Shown: piece by piece, positions 11,558-44,081 of the stretch
Numbering within the stretch: position 1 is the first letter of the stretch
Layout: each line of letters starts with the position of its first letter
Notes under the pieces: generated by a model
What the model saw: the letters and a program-made list of their open reading frames with translations, nothing else
Told to the model about the DNA's origin: nothing
The model's database searches: none
Translations under genes and position numbers: made by a program
Sequence record: MW272540.1
Direction: 5' to 3' (one strand)
DNA: 64,000 bases

Positions 11558-12514
11558 TTATACTTCTCTAGCATTAGTCAATAGGTTTTGTGACTTTTGA
11601 CGAGAGATTTGGTTTTTACGACCACGCCAATGTTTACCACAATCTGTACATTTGTACTGTTTGAATTTACTGACTTCAGTATATGCAAATCCAGCATCTT
11701 CAAATTCATGACTACCACAAGTACATGTGAATTTATCCGAATCTGTATACAGGGAGAAATTCGGGAGACGGTCAGACCAAGGAGCCAATTTAATATACAG
11801 CTCTTGAAGGGAAACAATATCATCAATATTGTAATCTTTCATTTCATCCCATGCTTCAATATTCCCAGCCATACATTCCTTCCAAAGCTCGAAACCGGGG
11901 AATTTATTATGTTTCGATTTTTTGGTTTCTGTGCATAGTTGGTCTGTCATATATTCAAGCTTACGAGATGTAAACCCAAATGTGCGTTTTGCGATCTCCA
12001 TCGTATCGATGTGTCTGATACCAGAGAATGGTTTCATACCATGGATAATCATACGAGCGCGAATTTTTGGTACGTCGAACCGACGACCGTTTTGATGGAT
12101 AACAATATCGGCTTCGTCAAGAAGTTCCCAAAGAACTTTAAGCATATTGGAATCATCGGTAATATCGTTTTCAGCTCTCTGATCCATATAAATGATATCT
12201 TCACTATCAAACCATTTTGCAGCAAAACTAAGCAAATGCCAATCTTGTTGAATTTGATTCAGACCTACGTTTTCTTTGAAAAGTCGCCATACGTTTGCGA
12301 GAATTGGTGCAGTTTCAATATCAAGAAGCAATACACGAGGACCCGTTTTGAGGTCGTCGATAATATCGTTTTCCTTCATATATCGTTCATAGTAATAATT
12401 TACAGAAGATTTAGAGATACCTAGAGCCTTGGCAATAGACCGTGATCCCATCTTCTTATTTTCCTTCATGTCAACAATTTGACCAATCAGGCTGTTATAA
12501 TTCTTAACGGACAT
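11558..12514 (-). CDS. RNase H-fold DEDD 3'-5' exonuclease with N-terminal HTH and C-terminal zinc ribbon
   Basis: LDIET, NGRRFD, HIDT and YNIDD motifs; SRSIAKALGISKSSV HTH; CTCGS...CTDCG. Confidence 0.8.
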   Translation of the reverse strand: MSVKNYNSLIGQIVDMKENKKMGSRSIAKALGISKSSVNYYYERYMKENDIIDDLKTGPRVLLLDIETAPILANVWRLFKENVGLNQIQQDWHLLSFAAKWFDSEDIIYMDQRAENDITDDSNMLKVLWELLDEADIVIHQNGRRFDVPKIRARMIIHGMKPFSGIRHIDTMEIAKRTFGFTSRKLEYMTDQLCTETKKSKHNKFPGFELWKECMAGNIEAWDEMKDYNIDDIVSLQELYIKLAPWSDRLPNFSLYTDSDKFTCTCGSHEFEDAGFAYTEVSKFKQYKCTDCGKHWRGRKNQISRQKSQNLLTNAREV

Positions 12515-12623: not shown

Positions 12624-13868
12624 TTACCAGCAATTCCTTTGGTTAAACTCATGGCTGACATCTTCAATAACTTCGTATTTCCAAGTACGAAGTTTGGCAT
12701 GGTCATATCCATGAGGAATAGCAACTACGTGTTCAGGATTAACCTTACACAGAATAACCCGGTCATGTGGGCAATGGGAGTAATTCGGGATATAACTCTT
12801 AGCTGCCACATGGTAACCACTGGAACACTCATTATTTCGGTCTGGGTCTACTTCAAAAGGTAACATTTCTGGAACCGAACCGATTGAGTTATCTACACTC
12901 TTTGTATAGATATCCAAATAATCGTTGGTAACCCGCTTGTATGCAAGGAAGTGCCCGTCTTCGGTGATCTTGATGTCGTTATGCTTCAGGAAGTCGAAAA
13001 GCTCATATACGGCTTCACGGCGAGGATTACGAACAAGGTTCTTCAGGAATTCAACCAAAGTAGAAACATCTTGACCGGCTTTCCAAGACTCTATAATTCT
13101 ACGGGTCATATTGGTGTCCAGAACAACATCTTTATATGTCAGGATGTTACCCTCGATCTTGATATCCCCATTTACATAGTTTTCAATTGCTCGTTTGACG
13201 GAAATTAAACCAACCGCTTTTTCTACATCATTTTCATAAATCAGAACATTCCGAGCTTCTTCGAATTTAGGATGGCTAGAATCTGCTGTATAAGCTTCCC
13301 CATCGACATAGCAGTTAATGAACGAATGACCACAGTTCCAAGAACTCACGACTTCTTTTTTCGGTGGTTCAACTACAATTTCAATTTCGACATATTCGGT
13401 CGGAGTTTCTTTCACAAGAACAGAAGCAACCGCCTTTTCGTGTTTTTTCTGGATACCCTTATGACGTCGAACTACATCACCAACCGTGGAACGGGGAATA
13501 CCGGTTTGTCGAGAAATCTCATTTTGACTAAGACCGGATTCGTGGAGACGAATGATTTTTTGATCTCGGGTTTCTTCAACCGGTTTATTTTCAGCGAAAT
13601 CAAAATTTGCCGCATAGAAAATATCAATAAGTTTAGCCGGGGTTATTTCTAGAAGTTCATCAGAAACAGATTGGAACAGCTTTATATCTGGAATATCGAA
13701 ATCAAATTCCTCTTCTAGGATCATAACCAGTTCGATCACATCAAGTTCATCCAAACCAAGATCACCAAATGTGTCTGTAGGTTGAATAACATCTCGTTTT
13801 GTGAATCCAAATTCTTCAATCAATGCTTTATGAAACACTTCTGAAATATTTTCTTTCGTAATAATCAT
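12624..13868 (-). CDS. rIIB: rIIB protein with N-terminal acyl-carrier-protein-like domain
   Basis: The C-terminal ~310 aa carry the rIIB HTH and LFDFLKHNDIKITEDGHFLAYK, CSSGYHV and KLRTWKYEV motifs. The N-terminus DLGLDELDVIELVMILEEEFDFDIPD is ACP-like. Start MIITK follows GAGG. Confidence 0.92.
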   Translation of the reverse strand: MIITKENISEVFHKALIEEFGFTKRDVIQPTDTFGDLGLDELDVIELVMILEEEFDFDIPDIKLFQSVSDELLEITPAKLIDIFYAANFDFAENKPVEETRDQKIIRLHESGLSQNEISRQTGIPRSTVGDVVRRHKGIQKKHEKAVASVLVKETPTEYVEIEIVVEPPKKEVVSSWNCGHSFINCYVDGEAYTADSSHPKFEEARNVLIYENDVEKAVGLISVKRAIENYVNGDIKIEGNILTYKDVVLDTNMTRRIIESWKAGQDVSTLVEFLKNLVRNPRREAVYELFDFLKHNDIKITEDGHFLAYKRVTNDYLDIYTKSVDNSIGSVPEMLPFEVDPDRNNECSSGYHVAAKSYIPNYSHCPHDRVILCKVNPEHVVAIPHGYDHAKLRTWKYEVIEDVSHEFNQRNCW

Positions 13869-13876
13869 TTTAATCC

Positions 13877-16159
13877 TCATTTGGATTGGGGGAAATCATC
13901 CCCCAACACATTTTTGTTAATTTCATCTTTCAGAACACCATCAATTGTAATATAGCTGAAATTTCTAGTTTTAGTAGTCATTAGAGTATATGCCATAATG
14001 TGGTCTTTCTTAAGTTTTTCTGTGAAATCTGTAATTTTTTGGGTTTGTTCCAACTTGACCTCAGAAACAATATTCCCATATTTTCCCATGTAGTCAGCAG
14101 GTAGGATAGTCTCACAATATCTAAACAGGCGGTCAAGGTAACCATCCCAATCTTTTTTAAGACTCAGTTTGAAATGGCTAATAATCTCTTCTGTATAATT
14201 ATGTAGTGTTAAGTCATTAATGAAATAACCTACTTTATCTTTCGAGAATTGTTTTTCCAATTCACTTTGCATGATTTTGGAAATATCAGATTTATCCAAT
14301 CTCTTCAGATTTTTATTCTTTTCGGCTTGTTTAGTATGTACCTTATTGAGTTTGAAAACATTCTCTTTAAGGATATCACTAACCATTGCCAAAATGTAAT
14401 CTTCTACTTGAAGATTCATTTGTGTTTCGTCTGAGTCAACAACGTGTCCGTGGATCATACCCACATAATATCCAGAAAGGTCCTTGATGTCTTTTGAAAC
14501 ACAATAAATCTCTTGGATCCCGGTGTTTGGAGAATGGTATTTTACGTTGGGTTTACCTGCTCGGCTTTCTACTGGATTGTTTTTTCGCCATTCTTTTCGC
14601 CGTTCTGATTGAAGTTCCTTTTCGCGAGCAATGATATCCGGTCCATACTTTTCCCAAACCTTATTTGCATCAACAACTTCGATGTCATCTTTGTGATATC
14701 GTTTTGCGATCTCAACAAAGACGTCTTTAACGATTTTGGAAATCCTCTTATTATAATGGTTAGTATTGAAAACAATCATAGAGCCATTATTAATGTAACC
14801 TTCTTCGTGAAGCTTCTTAAGCTTTTTTCTGTACCCACGTTCATCGGTATCAATTAATACCATCGCAGCATTCAAACGGAATTGGTTATATCTCGGGTCA
14901 ACAAAAGAATCCACCACATAAGTATAAGCATCCGAAGAATACCGACTTGTATGATAAGAACGTTTTCGGTTGTAGATCCTACCGTTGGTTGTCCCCATTC
15001 CTGATGTGCGATAGGTAGTGATATCTTTATTTTTTGGATCATCCTTAACAAGGGAAATATACCTCAACCAAGGACTCGAAAGTTCAAAGGAATTATAGAA
15101 CTTTTCCCAATCCCTCAACGATTTACCGTTGTGGAAAATATCATTACAGATTTTGCTGAAAATAGAATTACCCTGCTCAAGTTTTTTGATTGCATTAATC
15201 TTAGCTCTTGCGTCTTTTTGACCTTCAATCGCTTGATCTACCATCTTAATAACTTGGTCGTTATACGTCTGGAAATACGACTTCAAGGTTTCCATAGTAT
15301 GTTTATCTAGGCTCAACTCTTCCCGGTTTGGAAGCATATTAACGGAACCCATCGGAAAATCTATGAATCGTTTCGCATTAGCCGGGAAAAATATTTCCGC
15401 CAGTGTATTTTCGAATACGTCTCGTGGGATCTCATAAGGAACACCACCCATCACCGCATACACACCAGATTTGTATAGTTCTGGTGAAGAACAATCGTTA
15501 TTCTCCCAATCTTTATAATTCAAAAGATCGATAGACATCCCTTTATATTTCGGGTAATAACCGTTCTTATCAAATGTGAAGTACACATACTGACTTTCTT
15601 TGATGAAGGTTGGAATATCATCTTCTTTAACCGGAATGACGATTTCAACGCCTGTAGGCTCGTCTGAGGGGCCTTCGAACACAGGAACACAGTTTGGTTC
15701 ACCGTCGTTCATATAAATGCTATAAACGGTTTTGGTGCCGTTAAAATAGGACGTTACGGTAAAGTTTGTAGTGTAGCAAAACGGACTTTTCGAACCTAGA
15801 CCAAATGCCCCGATAAAATCGTCTGATTGGTCTTTAGACGAAGCAAAATAAGTTGCGAAAAGTCGAAAAATATTTTCTTTATCAAGACCAATCCCGTAAT
15901 CTCGAAGTTTCCATTGGAGATCCAGAATAGAAGGGAGAGTAACATCAAAATATTTTGGTGGACTGCCGCCTGCTAGTTCCAAGGCTTTATGACCATCGAT
16001 AGCGTTACAGCTCAACTCACGAATAAAAGCACGGATCTTATACTTATACAACCCAGAAGAAAGAATTGTATAAGCTTTCTTGTTAAATTCCATCCCATAG
16101 GTACGCCCTTCTTCCGTAGTCGAGCTATGGACCGGGGAGTGATGTTCAACCATTTTCAT
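13877..16159 (-). CDS. rIIA: rIIA protein
   Basis: GHKL ATPase motifs IRELSCNAIDG, DYGIGL, ASSK, IGAFGLGSKS; PNREEL; adjacent to rIIB. Confidence 0.95.
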   Translation of the reverse strand: MKMVEHHSPVHSSTTEEGRTYGMEFNKKAYTILSSGLYKYKIRAFIRELSCNAIDGHKALELAGGSPPKYFDVTLPSILDLQWKLRDYGIGLDKENIFRLFATYFASSKDQSDDFIGAFGLGSKSPFCYTTNFTVTSYFNGTKTVYSIYMNDGEPNCVPVFEGPSDEPTGVEIVIPVKEDDIPTFIKESQYVYFTFDKNGYYPKYKGMSIDLLNYKDWENNDCSSPELYKSGVYAVMGGVPYEIPRDVFENTLAEIFFPANAKRFIDFPMGSVNMLPNREELSLDKHTMETLKSYFQTYNDQVIKMVDQAIEGQKDARAKINAIKKLEQGNSIFSKICNDIFHNGKSLRDWEKFYNSFELSSPWLRYISLVKDDPKNKDITTYRTSGMGTTNGRIYNRKRSYHTSRYSSDAYTYVVDSFVDPRYNQFRLNAAMVLIDTDERGYRKKLKKLHEEGYINNGSMIVFNTNHYNKRISKIVKDVFVEIAKRYHKDDIEVVDANKVWEKYGPDIIAREKELQSERRKEWRKNNPVESRAGKPNVKYHSPNTGIQEIYCVSKDIKDLSGYYVGMIHGHVVDSDETQMNLQVEDYILAMVSDILKENVFKLNKVHTKQAEKNKNLKRLDKSDISKIMQSELEKQFSKDKVGYFINDLTLHNYTEEIISHFKLSLKKDWDGYLDRLFRYCETILPADYMGKYGNIVSEVKLEQTQKITDFTEKLKKDHIMAYTLMTTKTRNFSYITIDGVLKDEINKNVLGDDFPQSK

Positions 16160-27385: not shown

Positions 27386-28558
27386 TTAGAAGTCGAACAA
27401 GTCTTCAAGAGAAGTAGTTTTTTCTTGAGTCCAACAAACAGCGTCACAAATAGCCTGTAACGGTTTTTGGAAGTGCTTGCAATACATCCCTACGAAATCA
27501 ATATCCTTTTCTGGAATTATCCCAAAATCTTCAGGAATTTTATCACCAGAAGGCCACGCGATTGTTTCGATGTGGAATTTATTAGGAACCTTCAACATCG
27601 CATACTGGATTTTTTCACCAGAACGGATCGGGTCCACATAACTTCCTTTTTCTGTCAGGTCATGGCAAATCTTGTTGTAGTTGATCGCAGCTCTAACGTG
27701 ACCGGGACAACCACTAACAGGAGTAAAGTTTTCATGATTCTTTTCGATGTTATTGGCACTACTTACTTGTGCAATACGTCTATAATCCTGCTTACTGTAC
27801 TCGTCACGGACTTTCTCAACATGGTTGTGTAGGTCGGTCTCGGTCTGTGTCAGGATGATGTCTATGGCGGTTTCAAGCTGTTCTGACGCGAATGGTGGTG
27901 TGCTACTACGTCTAGTTTCGATACCCATGATCTTGAGCTTAGGAACCACATTACCATGTTCGTCAATTTTTCTCTTACCTTCGTTATCCCAAACAGAAAG
28001 AGCATATCGCTTTTTCTTAGTCCAGAATCCACGAGTTGCGATTACTTCTCGGTCCATAAACAGTTTATGATCGAAATAGTTCATATAGTCTTTCAATTCT
28101 CTATATGACGCATCAATATAAGGTTCTACTTTTTCTTTTGCGAAACGATCTAGCAAATCAACCCATTCAATAACTGGAACATCACCGATTTCAACCCCAC
28201 GCTTTTTAGCTAGAAGTTTTACAATCCCATCGGCTCGAACATATTGTGAGTCAGTATCACAATATACAACATAATCGATTCCACTTGTCCCACACAACTT
28301 ATTGAAATACTCATTGGTCTTTCTGGAAATCCATTTAATTGCAAGTTGTCCACCCATGGTAATAGATTCCGCCATTCTGAGGTCATAATATCTACCTACC
28401 GGGTGACCCAAAGAACCATAAAGTGAGTTAATCAATACCTTTTTTGCTTGTTGGGTGACGTTACACACCTTTTCGTATTTTCTACAATCTGAAATGAGCT
28501 GCTTTAGCTCATCATCAGACATATTATGAAGTTGTTCATCAGTATAATCTAGATTCAT
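27386..28558 (-). CDS. 43B: DNA polymerase, C-terminal subunit (gp43B)
   Basis: KVLINSLYG (motif B), YCDTDS (motif C), KKRYAL, GIETRRSSTP. Confidence 0.95.
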   Translation of the reverse strand: MNLDYTDEQLHNMSDDELKQLISDCRKYEKVCNVTQQAKKVLINSLYGSLGHPVGRYYDLRMAESITMGGQLAIKWISRKTNEYFNKLCGTSGIDYVVYCDTDSQYVRADGIVKLLAKKRGVEIGDVPVIEWVDLLDRFAKEKVEPYIDASYRELKDYMNYFDHKLFMDREVIATRGFWTKKKRYALSVWDNEGKRKIDEHGNVVPKLKIMGIETRRSSTPPFASEQLETAIDIILTQTETDLHNHVEKVRDEYSKQDYRRIAQVSSANNIEKNHENFTPVSGCPGHVRAAINYNKICHDLTEKGSYVDPIRSGEKIQYAMLKVPNKFHIETIAWPSGDKIPEDFGIIPEKDIDFVGMYCKHFQKPLQAICDAVCWTQEKTTSLEDLFDF

Positions 28559-28827
28559 CGACGCGCACTCACTTCTATATCGTTAATAATAAAATCCATA
28601 CTATTACAATCCATATCATAATAAGGATTTGAACCATTCTCGATAATGGTATTTTTTCTGTGATTTAGAAAATCTTTCATCCGTTGGATTGTTGCTTGGC
28701 TAACAGGCTGAAATAAAAACATCGCTTTGAATTCTTCTAAATCATATTTTTTATCCGTGTCGTTCTGCAAGGATACGTGCGGCTCGTGTAGCAAGTGCAT
28801 CAGCTTTAAACTCCTCTTTTTTGGCAT
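28555..28827 (-). CDS. small ORF in the 43A/43B intercistronic region; start uncertain (ATG 28722 would give 55 aa)
   Basis: Open frame ending in an ATGA overlap with the 43B start; its 5' part overlaps the end of 43A. Confidence 0.4.
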   Translation of the reverse strand: MPKKRSLKLMHLLHEPHVSLQNDTDKKYDLEEFKAMFLFQPVSQATIQRMKDFLNHRKNTIIENGSNPYYDMDCNSMDFIINDIEVSARR

Positions 28828-30268
28828 CTTTACGTTGCAAGAATACTTTTTCTACTTCAATCGGAAGAAAACCGCGCTTCGCGTTGTCGTATCGAACACC
28901 GTTTGCTGCAACAGAATATTTTCCTTCGTGTGGTACTTCATATTGTTTGGTAACTAAACCCATACCCTCAATATCTGGAACCATACGGTCTTTAACTAGA
29001 ATTTTTGGGAAATCTAATTGGTCAACCAAAGTCTCAGGAGAAATATTCTCAGACATGATGATGTGTGGATACAGAGAAGTTAAGTCAAAAGACAACAACC
29101 ACTCATACAAGCCGGGTTTTGGTTCTTTAACAAACGCACCCGCAAACTTAGACCGTTGGGCATGTTTGTTTTCTGGAATAATTACGTGTTCTGCCAACAG
29201 GCTATTATAAATAATAGCGTCCCATGTTTTTAGTGGGCTGAATACGTCAGGTGCGTTTATTCCCGCATAATACGAAACTGATGCAATCAGGAAGATCAAA
29301 CTTAGCCGTTCTTCCAACTTCTTGATAATTTCAACGTCTCGGATCGCATAGTCAATATAAGTTTGTGGGTCTTTCGTGGCAAACATCAAATATGTTTTAT
29401 ATGGCATTTCCACTTTATTAATACCCAGCTCACATTCCGCGATTGTATCCAACTTATAGTTTGGTCTGGTTGTGAATGTAAATTTCTTATATGCAGCCAT
29501 GAAATCAACACAGTTAACACCCTGAATGACATAAGTAACCACATCATCATCGTTGTCGTCTTTTGATATAACCTGTGTGGTCTCTCCAAACGGTGAAAGT
29601 TTATGGATAAATCTCTCACCAAGCACCTTTTTAATACGACCAATCACATAAGGAATATCAAAGAATTCACTATTCCAACCGCTTAGATAATGCGGTGTGT
29701 TGGTAACAAAAAATTGCAAGAACTTAACCAAAACGTCTTTTTCGGATTCACACTTGATATATTCAACGTCATGTAGAACTTTACCATCAATGATTGATTT
29801 TTCTACATCCCATTCGCGAGTTGTCCAGATATAGTATTTCTTTTTCTTTGTACTATAGATCTGAATTGTATCAATTTCATATTCATGTTCTATTGCATGT
29901 GGGAAAGGTCCATCGGTTGGGACCTCGATATCCAAAAACATGATATCAAGCATAGTGTAATCATAAACAGAATTAGCCCCATAAGTATCAGAAATATACT
30001 GGAATGTATAATTGTCCATTCCCAATACTTCTTTACCCATAGACTGCATCTCTTTAAACCATTTTCTAGCTTCTCCAATAGAATCTAGTGATTTGGGAAG
30101 ACACCGACGACCATAGATGTCTCGATATGGAGTTTCAATGTGATCACCAACGTGGCGATATAGGGTTGGAGCGAACCTAACTTTACGAATCTGGTCTTGT
30201 CCAGCATCGTTAAAATATCGGTCATAGATGGTGTTTCCATCCATCCAAACGCTTGTATAAAAATTCAT
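28751..30268 (-). CDS. 43A: DNA polymerase, N-terminal subunit (gp43A)
   Basis: Exonuclease motifs LDIEV, GWNSEFFD and YAIRD; polymerase motif A SFDLTSLYP; start MNFYT after AGGAG. Confidence 0.95.
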   Translation of the reverse strand: MNFYTSVWMDGNTIYDRYFNDAGQDQIRKVRFAPTLYRHVGDHIETPYRDIYGRRCLPKSLDSIGEARKWFKEMQSMGKEVLGMDNYTFQYISDTYGANSVYDYTMLDIMFLDIEVPTDGPFPHAIEHEYEIDTIQIYSTKKKKYYIWTTREWDVEKSIIDGKVLHDVEYIKCESEKDVLVKFLQFFVTNTPHYLSGWNSEFFDIPYVIGRIKKVLGERFIHKLSPFGETTQVISKDDNDDDVVTYVIQGVNCVDFMAAYKKFTFTTRPNYKLDTIAECELGINKVEMPYKTYLMFATKDPQTYIDYAIRDVEIIKKLEERLSLIFLIASVSYYAGINAPDVFSPLKTWDAIIYNSLLAEHVIIPENKHAQRSKFAGAFVKEPKPGLYEWLLSFDLTSLYPHIIMSENISPETLVDQLDFPKILVKDRMVPDIEGMGLVTKQYEVPHEGKYSVAANGVRYDNAKRGFLPIEVEKVFLQRKDAKKEEFKADALATRAARILAERHG

Positions 30269-41772: not shown

Positions 41773-42242
41773 TTTAATTCCTTCAAATTGTAAATATTTT
41801 GGTTTGACGAACCCTTCCAAATCAAATTAGGATCTTTTAGTTCTTCTTCAAATCGACCATCGACCAAGACATCTATGTATTTCATTATACCACACATGGA
41901 CACATCTTTTGAAATCTCATCGAGGGTATAACCAGTCCACAACCAAATTGTTTTATTTGGGTACTTGTCTTTAAACCAAACAACAAACCGCAACACACCA
42001 CCACGGTTTTTGTGGAATAACGGGTCCCCACCAAGCAAGGATATACCATCTCGGTTAATCAATGAGTCTTCCATATCTTTTTCAACAAGTTTATAGATAT
42101 CCATATCCGACCCGTTATCATAATTCCAAGTGTGCTTAGAAAAACAACCCTTACACATATGATCACACCCAGAAAACCAAATGGAGGAACGAGTCCCCCA
42201 TCCATTTACTACATCTAAACTTTTATAATCCGCAATTTTCAT
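41769..42242 (-). CDS. nrdG: anaerobic RNR activase (radical SAM)
   Basis: [25 protein letters not shown]. Confidence 0.95.
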
Positions 42243-44081
42243 AGATGTTTTACCCTTCTCACCGATTCGTTATGTTTTCCATCGTTGAATGGTCTTTTTT
42301 CCACATCACCCAAATATCCACAAACCCGGCGACGAACGTCTAATTTATCACCATCGTGGTTCCCACAAGAAGGACACACATAACCTTTTGATGTCGGGTT
42401 CATCTCACCTTTATACCCACAATCAAAACACTGGTCGATTGGTGTATTTGTTCCATAATATGGAGTATGTTTATATGCAAAATCCCATACATCTTCTAGA
42501 GCTTTGAGATTATTTCTCATATTAGGGAATTCCCCATAAGAAATAAAACCACCTTTGGAGAAGGTAATAAAGTCTCGCTCAAACAAGATCTTATGATATG
42601 GATCTGTTTTATGCTCAACATCAAGGTGGAAAGAGTTGGTGTAATATCCTTTGTCATGGACTGAATGAATGTGATGTTTCTTATCCAATTTGACAAATCT
42701 TTCACACAGAGACTCACTAGGAGTACCGTACAAAGAGAATGCAAATCCGGTTTCTTTAGTCCATTCGTCTGTAATGTACTTCATTTTTCGTAAAACAGCA
42801 AGACAAAACTCTTGTTTTTCCTTGTTGTTAAAGATATGTGACGGATCGTTAAAATTAATGATCTCACTTACCTCATGTAGTCCGATATAACCACAAGACA
42901 CACTAGCTCTACCATTCTCAAACAGATGAAACACATCATCATCAGCGTTTAAACGAGCCACAGCCCCGTTCATGTACAGGATGGGGGCAACTGATGCCTT
43001 AACGCCTTTGAATCGCTCTATGCGAGAAATAAGTGCCTTCTTGACGATTTCCATCCGGTCGGAAAGACACGCCATGAATTTTTCTTTATCACCACCAACA
43101 TCAAGGGCAATTCTCGGTAGGTTTAGGGTAACAACCCCGGCGTTAAATCGTCCATCGTGTACCTCTTCACCAGCTTCATTTTTCCATGGGTTAAGGAAAG
43201 AACGACAACCCATCGGCGCTTTAAAACTGCCAGTAACTTGGACAACTTGGTCATAACTAACTATATCAGGATACATACGCTCGGATGAACATTTTAAAGC
43301 CAGTTGCTTAATGTCATAGAACGGATCTGACGATTTGAGATTATGACCATCTTTGAGAATAAAAATCAGTTTCGGGAATACCGGCGTTTCATGGTCATCA
43401 CCAAGACCATCCATACGAACACGAAGAATCATCTCTTGGATCAGTTTCGCCTCTGGTGAAGTCCCCAGACCAAAAGACAATGTGGTAAATGGGGTTTGAC
43501 CTTGTGACGTACTCAATGAGTTAATTTGGTACTCGATGGTTTGCATAGAGTCATATACGATTTTACGTAGAGTATTTTCGACGTATTCTTTTTTATTCGG
43601 GATTTTATAATGGATTGCTTCAGCACATAGACGGTTATAATCCATCTTAACGTACTCTTCCAATACCAAATCGATATTGGCAATTGTATTACCACCATAA
43701 ATGTGATTAGCAACTTGAGTGATAATCTGGGTAATAATATTTGCAGCAGTTTTAACGTTTTTTTGGTTTGCTAATTTTCGCATTAGACAAAGTGAATCCA
43801 TGATCGAACATGTCTTTGACATTAATCAACATACAATTAAAAAACGGGAGAAGTGGACTATAACCAAGATCGTGGAAATGGATAATACCATCTCGGTGCG
43901 CGTCCAAAATATCAGGGGATAAAAAAGTGCTTGCATATGCTTTGCTTACAGCACTAGCCAACGCATCTCGTTTTGTGGGGAAGATCTTCAGATCCTTATT
44001 AGCATTCTCTTTTGTTAATTCTGGGTCGGAATCACCAACAATGCTCATTACTTCTTTATAAAGATTCATATTACTTACCAT
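42239..44081 (-). CDS. nrdD: anaerobic ribonucleotide reductase, frameshifted in an A7 run at 43758-43764
   Basis: The N-part (ENANKD, HFHDL, NCML) and C-part (YGG, QTPF, FPKL, MGCRS, RRVCGYL) join as ...KPKNVKTAA... if one A is removed. Confidence 0.9.

Follow-up and report, generated by a model that had tools for sequence, protein, structure and literature searches.

The rIIA and rIIB genes are among the founding genes of molecular genetics, and rIIA is the customary partner of rIIB. T4 rIIB (NP_049889, 312 aa) starts at a helix-turn-helix (HTH), continues into the rIIB core, and is encoded immediately downstream of rIIA. rIIB function is characterized by protection from Rex-type exclusion and by rapid lysis in mutants. 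The biochemical mechanism of rIIA/rIIB has been described as unclear (bioRxiv 10.1101/2023.05.28.542683).

Acyl carrier proteins (ACPs) are the second group of relevance here. E. coli AcpP, like Vibrio harveyi ACP (2L0Q), has a four-helix fold; it is free-standing and has a phosphopantetheine serine. Helix II of AcpP is the partner-binding element, and residues Leu42-Val43-Met44, Phe50, and Ile54 are required to bind SpoT, FabZ, FabA, and PlsX (PMC3340395). An ACP can also serve as a binding partner and not as a shuttle, as is the case for AcpP in MukBEF and for mitochondrial ACP in complex I and with LYR proteins; in none of these cases are ACP and partner fused. Of apo-ACP and holo-ACP, the former is the stronger inhibitor of glycerol-3-phosphate acyltransferase (review PMC3896788), a precedent for an ACP that is active without its cofactor. 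That is, in the inhibition of E. coli PlsB, cofactor-less ACP acts through protein binding, the ACP being host ACP that accumulates unmodified. The PP-binding fold likewise outlives its serine in the inactive carrier domains of polyketide and non-ribosomal peptide synthases. Phages also encode ACPs as separate small proteins (PHROG 5934/4154). In IMG/VR, such free-standing phage ACPs account for at least 78 of the 80 best ACP matches, and the serine is kept at 80 of 81 scored sites in IMG/VR ACP loci; these phage proteins are presumably true carriers.

The window, i.e., the whole stretch of 64,000 nucleotides from sequence record MW272540.1 that was analyzed, is from Aeromonas phage ZPAH1, a T4-like phage of the Straboviridae, Emmerichvirinae. 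Its rIIB protein begins with a domain that has the ACP fold of AcpP and of the free-standing phage ACPs, and differs from both in being covalently fused to another protein. It differs from the serine-less synthase carriers, which lie within megasynthases, in being on a phage protein without known enzymology. The features of the locus are as follows.

12624..13868, minus strand: rIIB gene, 414 aa, a single uninterrupted open reading frame with its stop codon at 12624-12626; the modules are, in order, ACP fold, linker, HTH, linker, and rIIB core
13593..13868, minus strand: ACP-fold domain, residues 1-92, four helices, seen by PF00550, PDB ACP matches, AlphaFold2, and Foldseek
13746..13748, minus strand: phosphopantetheine-serine position, Glu41, codon GAA, the first residue of helix II and the equivalent of AcpP Ser36
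13704..13748, minus strand: helix II, the "recognition helix", residues 41-55, ELDVIELVMILEEEF (alignments A2 and A4)
13575..13592, minus strand: flexible linker, residues 93-98, with low pLDDT and gappy, variable alignment columns
13449..13574, minus strand: HTH, residues 99-140, matching HTH_SB, HTH_23, and other HTH families; basic, pI about 10
12636..13343, minus strand: rIIB core, residues 176-411, PF26926 Phage_T4_rIIB (precomputed PF26926 match)
12825-12827, minus strand: Cys348, invariant in the rIIB core
12810-12812, minus strand: His353, invariant in the rIIB core
13874..13878, minus strand: Shine-Dalgarno sequence GAGGA; it precedes the ATG of rIIB by 5 nt and shares bases with the stop codon of rIIA, TGA (13877-13879)
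13877..16159, minus strand: rIIA gene, 760 aa, matching phrog_612 at 3e-143, directly upstream of rIIB in the same orientation

The open reading frame is 100% identical to the annotated ZPAH1 rIIB, QQG33950.1, and the gene order topoisomerase, rIIA, rIIB, exonuclease is common to ZPAH1 and its relatives. The assignment as rIIB follows from homology of the core, an HTH ahead of the core, and a position directly downstream of rIIA, as in T4, in a T4-like genome. Residues 92-411 match the rIIB family phrog_609 at 3e-98. The ZPAH1 and T4 proteins are 36% identical over 316 residues (E = 2e-65), with T4 residues 5-311 aligned and T4 residue 5 paired with ZPAH1 residue 95, so that HTH and core are homologous end to end. 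T4 rIIB also has the motif with the equivalents of Cys348 and His353. Whereas T4 rIIB starts at the HTH, ZPAH1 rIIB has 94 additional N-terminal residues, which form the ACP fold. The preliminary description of this DNA had called the remainder a normal rIIB beginning with its HTH, and had stated that T4 rIIB has no ACP domain; both statements agree with the phrog_609 match and the T4 alignment.

A fusion of this kind could be produced artefactually by a sequencing or annotation error that merges a separate small ACP gene with rIIB. The same continuous frame is found in independent genomes, however. Aswh_1, at 98.9% nucleotide identity, has the same open frame, as do 15 further Emmerichvirinae isolates. 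Thus, all 17 of the 17 sequenced Emmerichvirinae isolates, which span two genera, carry the full-length domain in frame, the serine site being occupied by Glu, Gly, or Asp. No stop codon separates the domains. In a start-codon scan, the only Shine-Dalgarno sequence was at codon 1 of rIIB, and no ATG, GTG, or TTG was found between codons 50 and 151 of ZPAH1 rIIB. Since a T4-type rIIB has no internal start codon to begin from, the fusion is obligate and the protein is made as one chain. The sole apparent relative without an ACP, P0010 (305 aa), at first resembled a close relative of phage 65 rIIB that naturally has no ACP, and was rejected: its gene call is cut by the end of the contig, and the C-terminal half of the ACP lies in frame upstream. 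We regard an artefact as practically negligible. Two findings that the preliminary description had named as fatal to its proposal, a downstream translation start and a sequencing error hiding a stop codon, are thereby disposed of.

Several independent lines of evidence identify the N-terminal fold. The Pfam PP-binding family PF00550 matches residues 25-66 at 29.5 bits (E = 9e-7; the gathering cut-off is 20.8), and the PHROG ACP family phrog_5934 matches ZPAH1 rIIB at 3e-12. Searching the PDB with phmmer gives V. harveyi ACP at 1e-9 and E. coli AcpP at 2e-8, and BLASTP aligns the domain with AcpP at 25 identical residues of 54 (46%, E = 1e-13). Residues 35-61 read GDLGLDELDVIELVMILEEEFDFDIPD, and a residue-by-residue recount returns the 19 of 26 positions identical to AcpP that were reported at the outset. 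A word-indexed protein search with residues 1-95 returned no match besides ZPAH1 rIIB itself, and the same search with the domain alone returned only two ordinary ACPs, the index being too strict for a short diverged query. In the AlphaFold2 model, helices at residues 5-20, 41-55, 61/63-68, and 77-92/94 give the four-helix ACP topology, with the long loop between helices I and II that is typical of the fold, and helix II begins exactly at Glu41. In a Foldseek search of the PDB, each of the best ~45-50 matches is an ACP at probability 1.00; the match to V. harveyi ACP has TM 0.74 and rmsd 2.7 Å, and the target-normalized TM reaches 0.82. The domain is close to AcpP in size and departs from it in an insertion of ~4-8 residues ahead of helix IV. 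Residues 1-92 have a net charge of about -16, and the pI of residues 1-90, 4.05, is equal to that of AcpP (4.05). The ACP domain and its negative charge, both proposed in the preliminary description, are thus upheld, and the structure prediction that it proposed as a check gave the expected fold. pLDDT falls below 50 at residues 91-96 and exceeds 90 in the rIIB core. The linker, residues 93-98, differs in sequence and length between relatives.

At the position of the phosphopantetheine serine, the canonical Asp-Ser-Leu is replaced by Asp40-Glu41-Leu42, without a local Ser or Thr; the sequence and the codon table bear out the reported replacement of serine by Glu, codon GAA at 13748-13746. Phosphopantetheinyl transferases cannot do without the hydroxyl group of the serine that starts helix II. 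The domain is therefore predicted, as had been proposed, to be an ACP fold that is not loadable at the canonical site. Mitochondrial ACP complexes need the acyl-phosphopantetheine arm; the ZPAH1 domain, without the serine, could not bear one. It might be supposed that the domain has remained a carrier and is loaded at some other, non-canonical position, as the ACP fold and the acidic helix II recognized by AcpS are intact. Given the transferases' need for serine, the lack of a nearby Ser or Thr, and the Gly or Asp found at the site in relatives, we consider this highly improbable.

The residues found at the serine site over all rIIB fusions are S, D, N, G, and E. All five are commonplace in the first helical turn, so Glu needs no special explanation as a charge mimic. 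Glu occurs at the site in four or more architectures, and no serine codon can be reached from it with fewer than two nucleotide changes. It is possible that Glu41 mimics the phosphodiester of holo-ACP; the recurrence of Glu fits this idea, but helix N-terminal preferences predict the same set of residues. A stepwise path from Ser (AGT) through Gly (GGA) to Asp (GAT) or Glu (GAA) is compatible with the codons and gives no direction.

In contrast to the variable serine site, which is E, G, D, or S in alignment A2, the rest of helix II is conserved. Helix II is identical to AcpP residues 35-50 at 11 of 16 positions, compared with 15 of 55 in the remainder of the domain. Among the relatives, Asp43, Glu46, Leu47, Met49, and Glu52 are invariant (AcpP Asp38, Glu41, Leu42, Met44, and Glu47). 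ZPAH1 has equivalents of AcpP Asp35, Asp38, Glu41, Leu42, Val43, Met44, Glu47, Glu48, Phe50, and Ile54, and thus retains all five of the client-binding residues Leu42-Val43-Met44, Phe50, and Ile54. AcpP Thr39 is Val in ZPAH1, and no rIIB fusion has Thr at this position. No part of any ACP is better conserved than helix II; its conservation partly underlies the detectability of such domains and also stabilizes the fold.

We tentatively prefer, with a little less than even confidence, the reading that residues 1-92 are an ACP-derived domain that has abandoned carrier chemistry and acts as a protein-binding module. The domain, translated in one chain with the HTH and core and held by the flexible linker, would expose that face of helix II, acidic and hydrophobic, by which AcpP docks onto all its clients. 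Its most likely role would be either to anchor the rIIA/rIIB machinery to one of the proteins with which host ACP normally associates or to compete with host ACP for such a protein. A plausible partner would be a lipid-synthesis enzyme associated with the inner membrane, e.g., PlsB or PlsX. Binding through helix II, the partner, and the consequence for infection are inferences. The decoy role, or the recruitment of an ACP-binding host or defence protein, that the preliminary description suggested may likewise apply; what bears on it here is the likeness of helix II to that of AcpP. Several points weigh against the binding-module reading. The conservation of helix II bears in part on detection and also on the stability of the fold. 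The AlphaFold2 model, at pTM 0.54, leaves the ACP domain unplaced relative to the remaining rIIB. Also, at least one known client, SpoT, fails to bind apo-ACP and would therefore escape.

ACP modules recur across the rIIB family. The survey covered the top 270 of ~8,000 rIIB clusters. ACP modules are found in the architectures ACP-HTH-core, HTH-ACP-core, core-HTH-ACP, and core-ACP-tail. The ACP trait needs at least eight changes on a tree of 252 rIIB cores, and well-supported branches force at least five of them. P0210 differs from its nearest relative, P0180, by an inserted ACP module. ACP is the sole non-HTH accessory Pfam family among 122 diverse rIIB representatives. The custom ACP profile used was built partly from the fusion domains themselves, and independent Pfam scores confirm eight fusions above threshold. 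P0004, P0011/P0013, the phage 65 type, and the P0023 group were assigned by the custom profile and alignment; for phage 65, whose N-terminus is below Pfam detection, an independent BFVD model also has the ACP fold (rank 2, TM 0.71). Among the distant rIIB proteins with an ACP module, the DS[LF] serine is present in six and absent from six; with one metagenomic relative inside the Emmerichvirinae clade, that of ZPAH1, the motif is kept in seven fusions. The proposed survey of homologs thus found ACP modules, with a varying serine site, in distant rIIB proteins as well as in the 17 isolates. An IMG/VR scan with the Emmerichvirinae N-terminal alignment found nothing beyond three known isolate genomes. 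Given the recurrence of ACP in other domain orders and the seven fusions that keep the serine, the change from Ser to Glu came secondarily, inside a general association of rIIB with ACP, and does not define it. In literature searches on rIIB with ACP, phage ACP, and ACP-like domains, an rIIB-ACP fusion was not described.

This recurrence bears on an alternative, namely that the ACP partner is rIIB itself or rIIA. The core would be ACP-binding or ACP-dependent, with ACP supplied in cis in the fusions and as host AcpP in trans for T4-type rIIB, and the serine-less ZPAH1 copy would be a structural subunit or regulatory plug. PP-binding domains are usually fused to proteins that act on them, as in FAS, PKS, and NRPS, and ACP is the only non-HTH domain on rIIB and has been gained repeatedly. 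Seven fusions keep DS[LF]; of the six scanned with Pfam, five score 42-50 bits and the sixth, P0009, 24.3 bits. The core residues invariant over 150 diverse rIIB representatives, Cys348, His353, Asn281, Tyr359, Lys392, and Arg394, fit a catalytic or ligand site, and MukBEF and mitochondrial complex I, both represented among the fold matches, contain ACP as a structural subunit. On the other hand, the core has no fold or sequence likeness to solved enzymes, as neither a Foldseek fold search nor a profile search of PDB sequences found a PDB relative. The AlphaFold2 model shows no confident docking of the domains, the loss of serine in seven lineages is unexpected if carrier chemistry mattered, and the literature searches found no published rIIB-ACP interaction. 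We consider this alternative unlikely. In that reading, the fact that ACP, alone among non-HTH domains, was fused to rIIB repeatedly and independently implies a core that is ACP-binding or ACP-dependent, possibly an enzyme using Cys348 and His353, with T4-type rIIB using host AcpP or acyl-ACP in trans; as a claim about the core, this seems rather doubtful. The presence of ACP on only ~5% of sampled rIIB representatives indicates that the module is dispensable for rIIB function generally, and this frequency counts against the binding-module reading.

The acidic ACP fold may instead be an intramolecular regulator that masks the neighboring basic HTH until released by a signal, comparable to the autoinhibition of DNA binding by an acidic region in sigma-70. 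The charges are suited to this, as the pI is 4.05 for residues 1-90 versus 10.15 for residues 97-145, the HTH region, and ACP adjoins the HTH in three of the four architectures, all except core-ACP-tail. Yet P0053 has an ACP and no recognizable HTH, a long linker parts the two in P0210 and P0253, and T4-type rIIB functions without a mask. Mere acidity, moreover, would not demand the AcpP-specific Leu-Val-Met, Phe, and Ile. Such a mask is reckoned to be improbable.

The ACP domain is under purifying selection. dN/dS is below 1 in every pair, ranging from 0.14 to 0.65 in the ACP domain, with the peak in the phage 65/avDM6 pair, and from 0.09 to 0.16 in the rIIB core. The domain is retained although synonymous sites are saturated between the two genera. 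That its dN/dS is above that of the core counts against the binding-module reading. The serine-less versions score 29.5, 28.2, 21.4, and 16.9 bits on Pfam PP-binding, or not at all, compared with 42-50 bits for five of the six scanned versions with the serine; they are drifting, a further point against that reading. So is P0012, a member of the ZPAH1 clade with another N-terminus. These features could be those of a decaying relic, in which an ancestral rIIB acquired a working carrier that later lost its serine and persists as a stable acidic spacer with no specific function; the lower or undetected Pfam matches, the dN/dS of up to 0.65, P0012, and the P0023 group, in which only a helix-II-like remnant is left, are all consistent with decay. 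What a relic does not predict is a domain that is full-length and in frame in 17 of 17 isolates of two genera despite saturated synonymous divergence, dN/dS below 1 in every pair, invariant helix-II residues, and confident four-helix models for both ZPAH1 and phage 65. We judge decay to be quite improbable.

Domain fusions are among the few clues to a protein's working partners that can be had from sequence alone. The ACP fusion turns a vague "membrane integrity" role into concrete questions about AcpP or client binding, phospholipid synthesis, host range, and prophage exclusion. If the binding-module reading holds, ZPAH1 rIIB would be a natural viral case in which a carrier-protein fold has been put to use solely for binding. 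If, instead, the rIIB core is ACP-dependent, the rII system, Rex exclusion, and lysis inhibition would be tied to membrane-lipid metabolism.

Aeromonas phage ZPAH1 (MW272540.1) is a 231-kb T4-like phage (Straboviridae, Emmerichvirinae, Ishigurovirus). Its record is 100% identical to the window, and window positions are record positions minus 62000. Its rIIB lies in the usual early-region order, i.e., topoisomerase II large subunit, two small ORFs, rIIA, rIIB, and exonuclease, on the minus strand throughout. The relevant features are as follows.

11558-12514, minus strand: HTH-RNase_H_2 exonuclease, HTH N-terminal (phrog_403, 'DNA polymerase exonuclease subunit', 2e-113)
12624-13868, minus strand: rIIB, 414 aa, uninterrupted ORF, ATG at 13868
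12810-12827, minus strand: motif C-S-x-G-L/Y-H, rIIB codons 348-353, with Cys348 and His353 invariant
13874-13878, minus strand: rIIB Shine-Dalgarno GAGGA, 5 nt before the ATG, overlapped by the rIIA stop TGA (ATGAGGA, 13874-13880)
13877-16159, minus strand: rIIA, the upstream neighbour of rIIB

The rIIA stop falls within the Shine-Dalgarno sequence of rIIB, which points to translational coupling; an in-frame ATG at 13880, the alternative start, lacks a ribosome-binding site. The rIIA-rIIB-exonuclease order is kept in every relative examined. At 27386-30268 and 42239-44081 (minus strand), the replicative DNA polymerase is recorded as a pair of CDSs separated by a small ORF, and two overlapping CDSs are given for the large subunit of the anaerobic ribonucleotide reductase; each case is either a split gene or a frameshift.

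Residues 92–411 match phrog_609 (rIIB) at 3e-98, and T4 rIIB residues 5–311 align to ZPAH1 residues 95–408 with 36% identity. The T4 N-terminus gives HTH matches only, bearing out the preliminary description, in which T4 rIIB has no ACP domain. Judged by homology, HTH, and synteny, the ZPAH1 protein is a bona fide rIIB. In the core, Cys348, His353, Asn281, Tyr359, Lys392, and Arg394 do not vary among 150 diverse representatives of the family, which numbers about 8,000 clusters; the pattern resembles an active site or a ligand-binding site. No PDB relative of the core was found, by fold or by sequence. rIIB is an anti-RexAB factor whose mechanism is described as unclear (bioRxiv 10.1101/2023.05.28.542683). 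Expressed alone it is toxic, and it also triggers a CARD/gasdermin defence system.

The N-terminal domain is an ACP by fold. Residues 35–61 read GDLGLDELDVIELVMILEEEFDFDIPD. Pfam PP-binding matches residues 25–66 at 29.5 bits (gathering score 20.8), PHROG ACP family 5934 matches residues 3–63 at 3e-12, and the top PDB sequences are V. harveyi ACP (1e-9) and E. coli AcpP (2e-8), the latter with 25/54 identities by BLASTP. AlphaFold2, run with a 70-sequence alignment, gave a model with mean pLDDT 88, in which ACP helices (5–20, 41–55, 63–68, and 77–92) are followed by an HTH (101–136) and an alpha/beta core, with disordered linkers at 91–96 and 145–147. The comparison with ACP folds that the preliminary description had called for was clear: Foldseek returned ACPs as all top matches (probability 1.00), both for the whole model and for a separate model of residues 1–99, with TM 0.74 and rmsd 2.7 Å to V. 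harveyi ACP. A 74-aa metagenomic ACP, P0002, ordinary and serine-bearing, has an exact 15-residue match, ELVMILEEEFDFDIP, to the ZPAH1 domain. Bacterial AcpP is much nearer to this domain than to those of phages 65 or CC2, which could reflect slower drift or later exchange with an ACP gene.

The first description, of an ACP domain with Glu in place of serine fused to rIIB, is correct in every detail. A sequencing error hiding a stop is not seen, as the same open frame occurs in Aswh_1 (98.9% nucleotide identity) and other isolates; with protein identity of about 55%, the architecture is shared by phages 65, 65.2, avDM6, and CC2 and by eleven CC2-like isolates. Nor could translation begin beyond the domain: the stretch between codons 50 and 151 contains no ATG, GTG, or TTG, and HTH and core are therefore never produced without it.

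The codon matching AcpP Ser36 is GAA (13748-13746), confirming the reported replacement of serine by Glu (Glu41) and, with the fold, the idea of a non-loadable ACP. The domain shares the fold of acyl carrier proteins and passes the Pfam threshold but fails the defining serine test, and is therefore not to be classed as a carrier protein. The site reads LDELDVIEL (GAA) in ZPAH1 and Aswh_1, LDGLDVVEL (GGA) in the phage 65 type, LDDLDVVEL (GAT) in the CC2 type, and LDSLDVVEL (AGT) in P0009, a metagenomic CC2 relative on a syntenic 42-kb contig. In the alignment of these ACP domains, Leu39, Asp40, Leu42, Asp43, Val44, Glu46, Leu47, Met49, Glu52, Glu53, Asp56, and Asp58 are invariant, whereas the serine site, 'invariant' in real ACPs, is variable. 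Across rIIB-ACP fusions, the sequences indicate that serine was lost several times, with Glu the commonest replacement. Phosphate mimicry by Glu41 is not required: helix N-termini commonly have S, D, N, G, or E, and helix II of the AlphaFold2 model begins at Glu41.

A word-indexed search yielded 765 rIIB homologues, with precomputed Pfam placing PF00550 on two distant ones, and an exhaustive profile search yielded 8,066 clusters. An ACP profile was run on 253 stored rIIB sequences and matches were checked by Pfam; the family sample comprised the roughly 270 sequences nearest to the ZPAH1 clade.

Domain architectures of rIIB homologues
ACP-HTH-core: Emmerichvirinae clade and P0004
HTH-ACP-core: P0011 and P0013, motif DEL, syntenic 223-kb contig
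core-HTH-ACP: P0028, DSF, 42.8 bits
core-ACP-tail: P0053 (DEL, 28.2 bits) and P0253 (DEL, 21.4 bits)
core-linker-ACP, with or without C-terminal HTH: P0210 (DSL, 50.4 bits), P0194 (DSL, 43.3 bits), and P0186 (DSL, 45.4 bits)
degenerate helix-II remnant, Asn at the serine site: P0023 group

Since ACP modules recur in several architectures, ZPAH1 rIIB is one case of a specific, recurrent rIIB-ACP association. The Ser-to-Glu change is real but secondary to this general link. P0210 and its nearest relative P0180 have the core, linker, 'AAWPFP' motif, and C-terminal HTH in common and differ by the ACP, so the module was inserted or lost. On a quick FastTree of 252 cores, the trait changes at least 8 times, at least 5 of them forced by well-supported branches. 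When 122 representatives were scanned with Pfam, the accessory families were all HTH, bar PP-binding and two related ACP families. An IMG/VR scan added two serine-bearing rIIB-ACP fusions (L038 and L065); among its best 80 ACP matches, at least 78 were unrelated to rIIB, mostly small free-standing ACP genes, and serine was present at 80 of 81 sites scored.

In L065, a 77.6-kb contig, one open frame (frame +1) spans at least 843 aa and has a rIIB-core-like segment (303–439), a canonical serine-bearing ACP (544–613), and long low-complexity Ala/Pro/Lys-rich flanks. The metagenomic P0023, P0025, and P0033 (about 392 aa) carry a helix-II-like stretch, KKDNFDAVELGMRIEE, after the core, with Asn at the serine site, and a CxxC…CxxC zinc-ribbon-like C-terminal tail. 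The rIIB of Aeromonas phage phiAS5 (Chrysonvirus; L005:1171-2466, 432 aa) is extended differently at its N-terminus and lacks an ACP; two HTH-like repeat copies (…GRGVLARELNIGESAARKMIELV… and …GRTVLAKRLNIKESEARKIIEA…) precede the usual HTH.

The Emmerichvirinae-like clade of the core tree has 11 rows (support 99), 9 with an ACP. P0012 (551 aa) is its sole member without a detectable one; its unrelated 230-residue N-terminal region holds 'RDELDV', possibly a remnant. P0010 was rejected as an ACP-less close relative because its gene call ends at the contig end.

On the evidence, computational throughout, carrier chemistry is excluded for the ZPAH1 domain, and seven lineages can dispense with it. 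The domain is nonetheless retained, folded, selected, and obligatorily co-translated. ACP-domain dN/dS is 0.14–0.65, below 1 for all pairs measured, with lower values (0.09–0.16) for HTH and core; a slowly decaying relic is a weaker reading. Likewise weaker is an acidic mask over the basic HTH. The domain has pI 4.05, its pI and net charge are those of E. coli AcpP, and the adjoining HTH has pI 10.15. Because the domain is kept without carrier chemistry and with its helix-II face conserved, we read it as most likely an ACP-derived binding module; the role first suggested for it, decoy or recruiter, is a hypothesis, so that the first interpretation is supported in part. Helix II is identical to AcpP at 11/16 positions (other parts, 15/55), and the equivalents of AcpP Leu-Val-Met, Phe50, and Ile54 are kept, residues whose mutation abolishes binding to SpoT, FabZ, FabA, and PlsX (PMC3340395). 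The partner of such a module could be a host ACP client; apo-ACP inhibits glycerol-3-phosphate acyltransferase more than holo-ACP does (PMC3896788). Alternatively, the partner could be rIIB/rIIA itself, on the view that fused modules work together; the existence of serine-bearing fusions and the invariance of Cys348/His353 support this.

Public records label ZPAH1-type proteins rIIB only, the precomputed Pfam table has PF00550 for ZPAH1 rIIB, and no mention of an ACP domain on rIIB was found in the searchable literature. The rIIB-ACP link is a specific, testable biochemical lead on the rII problem.
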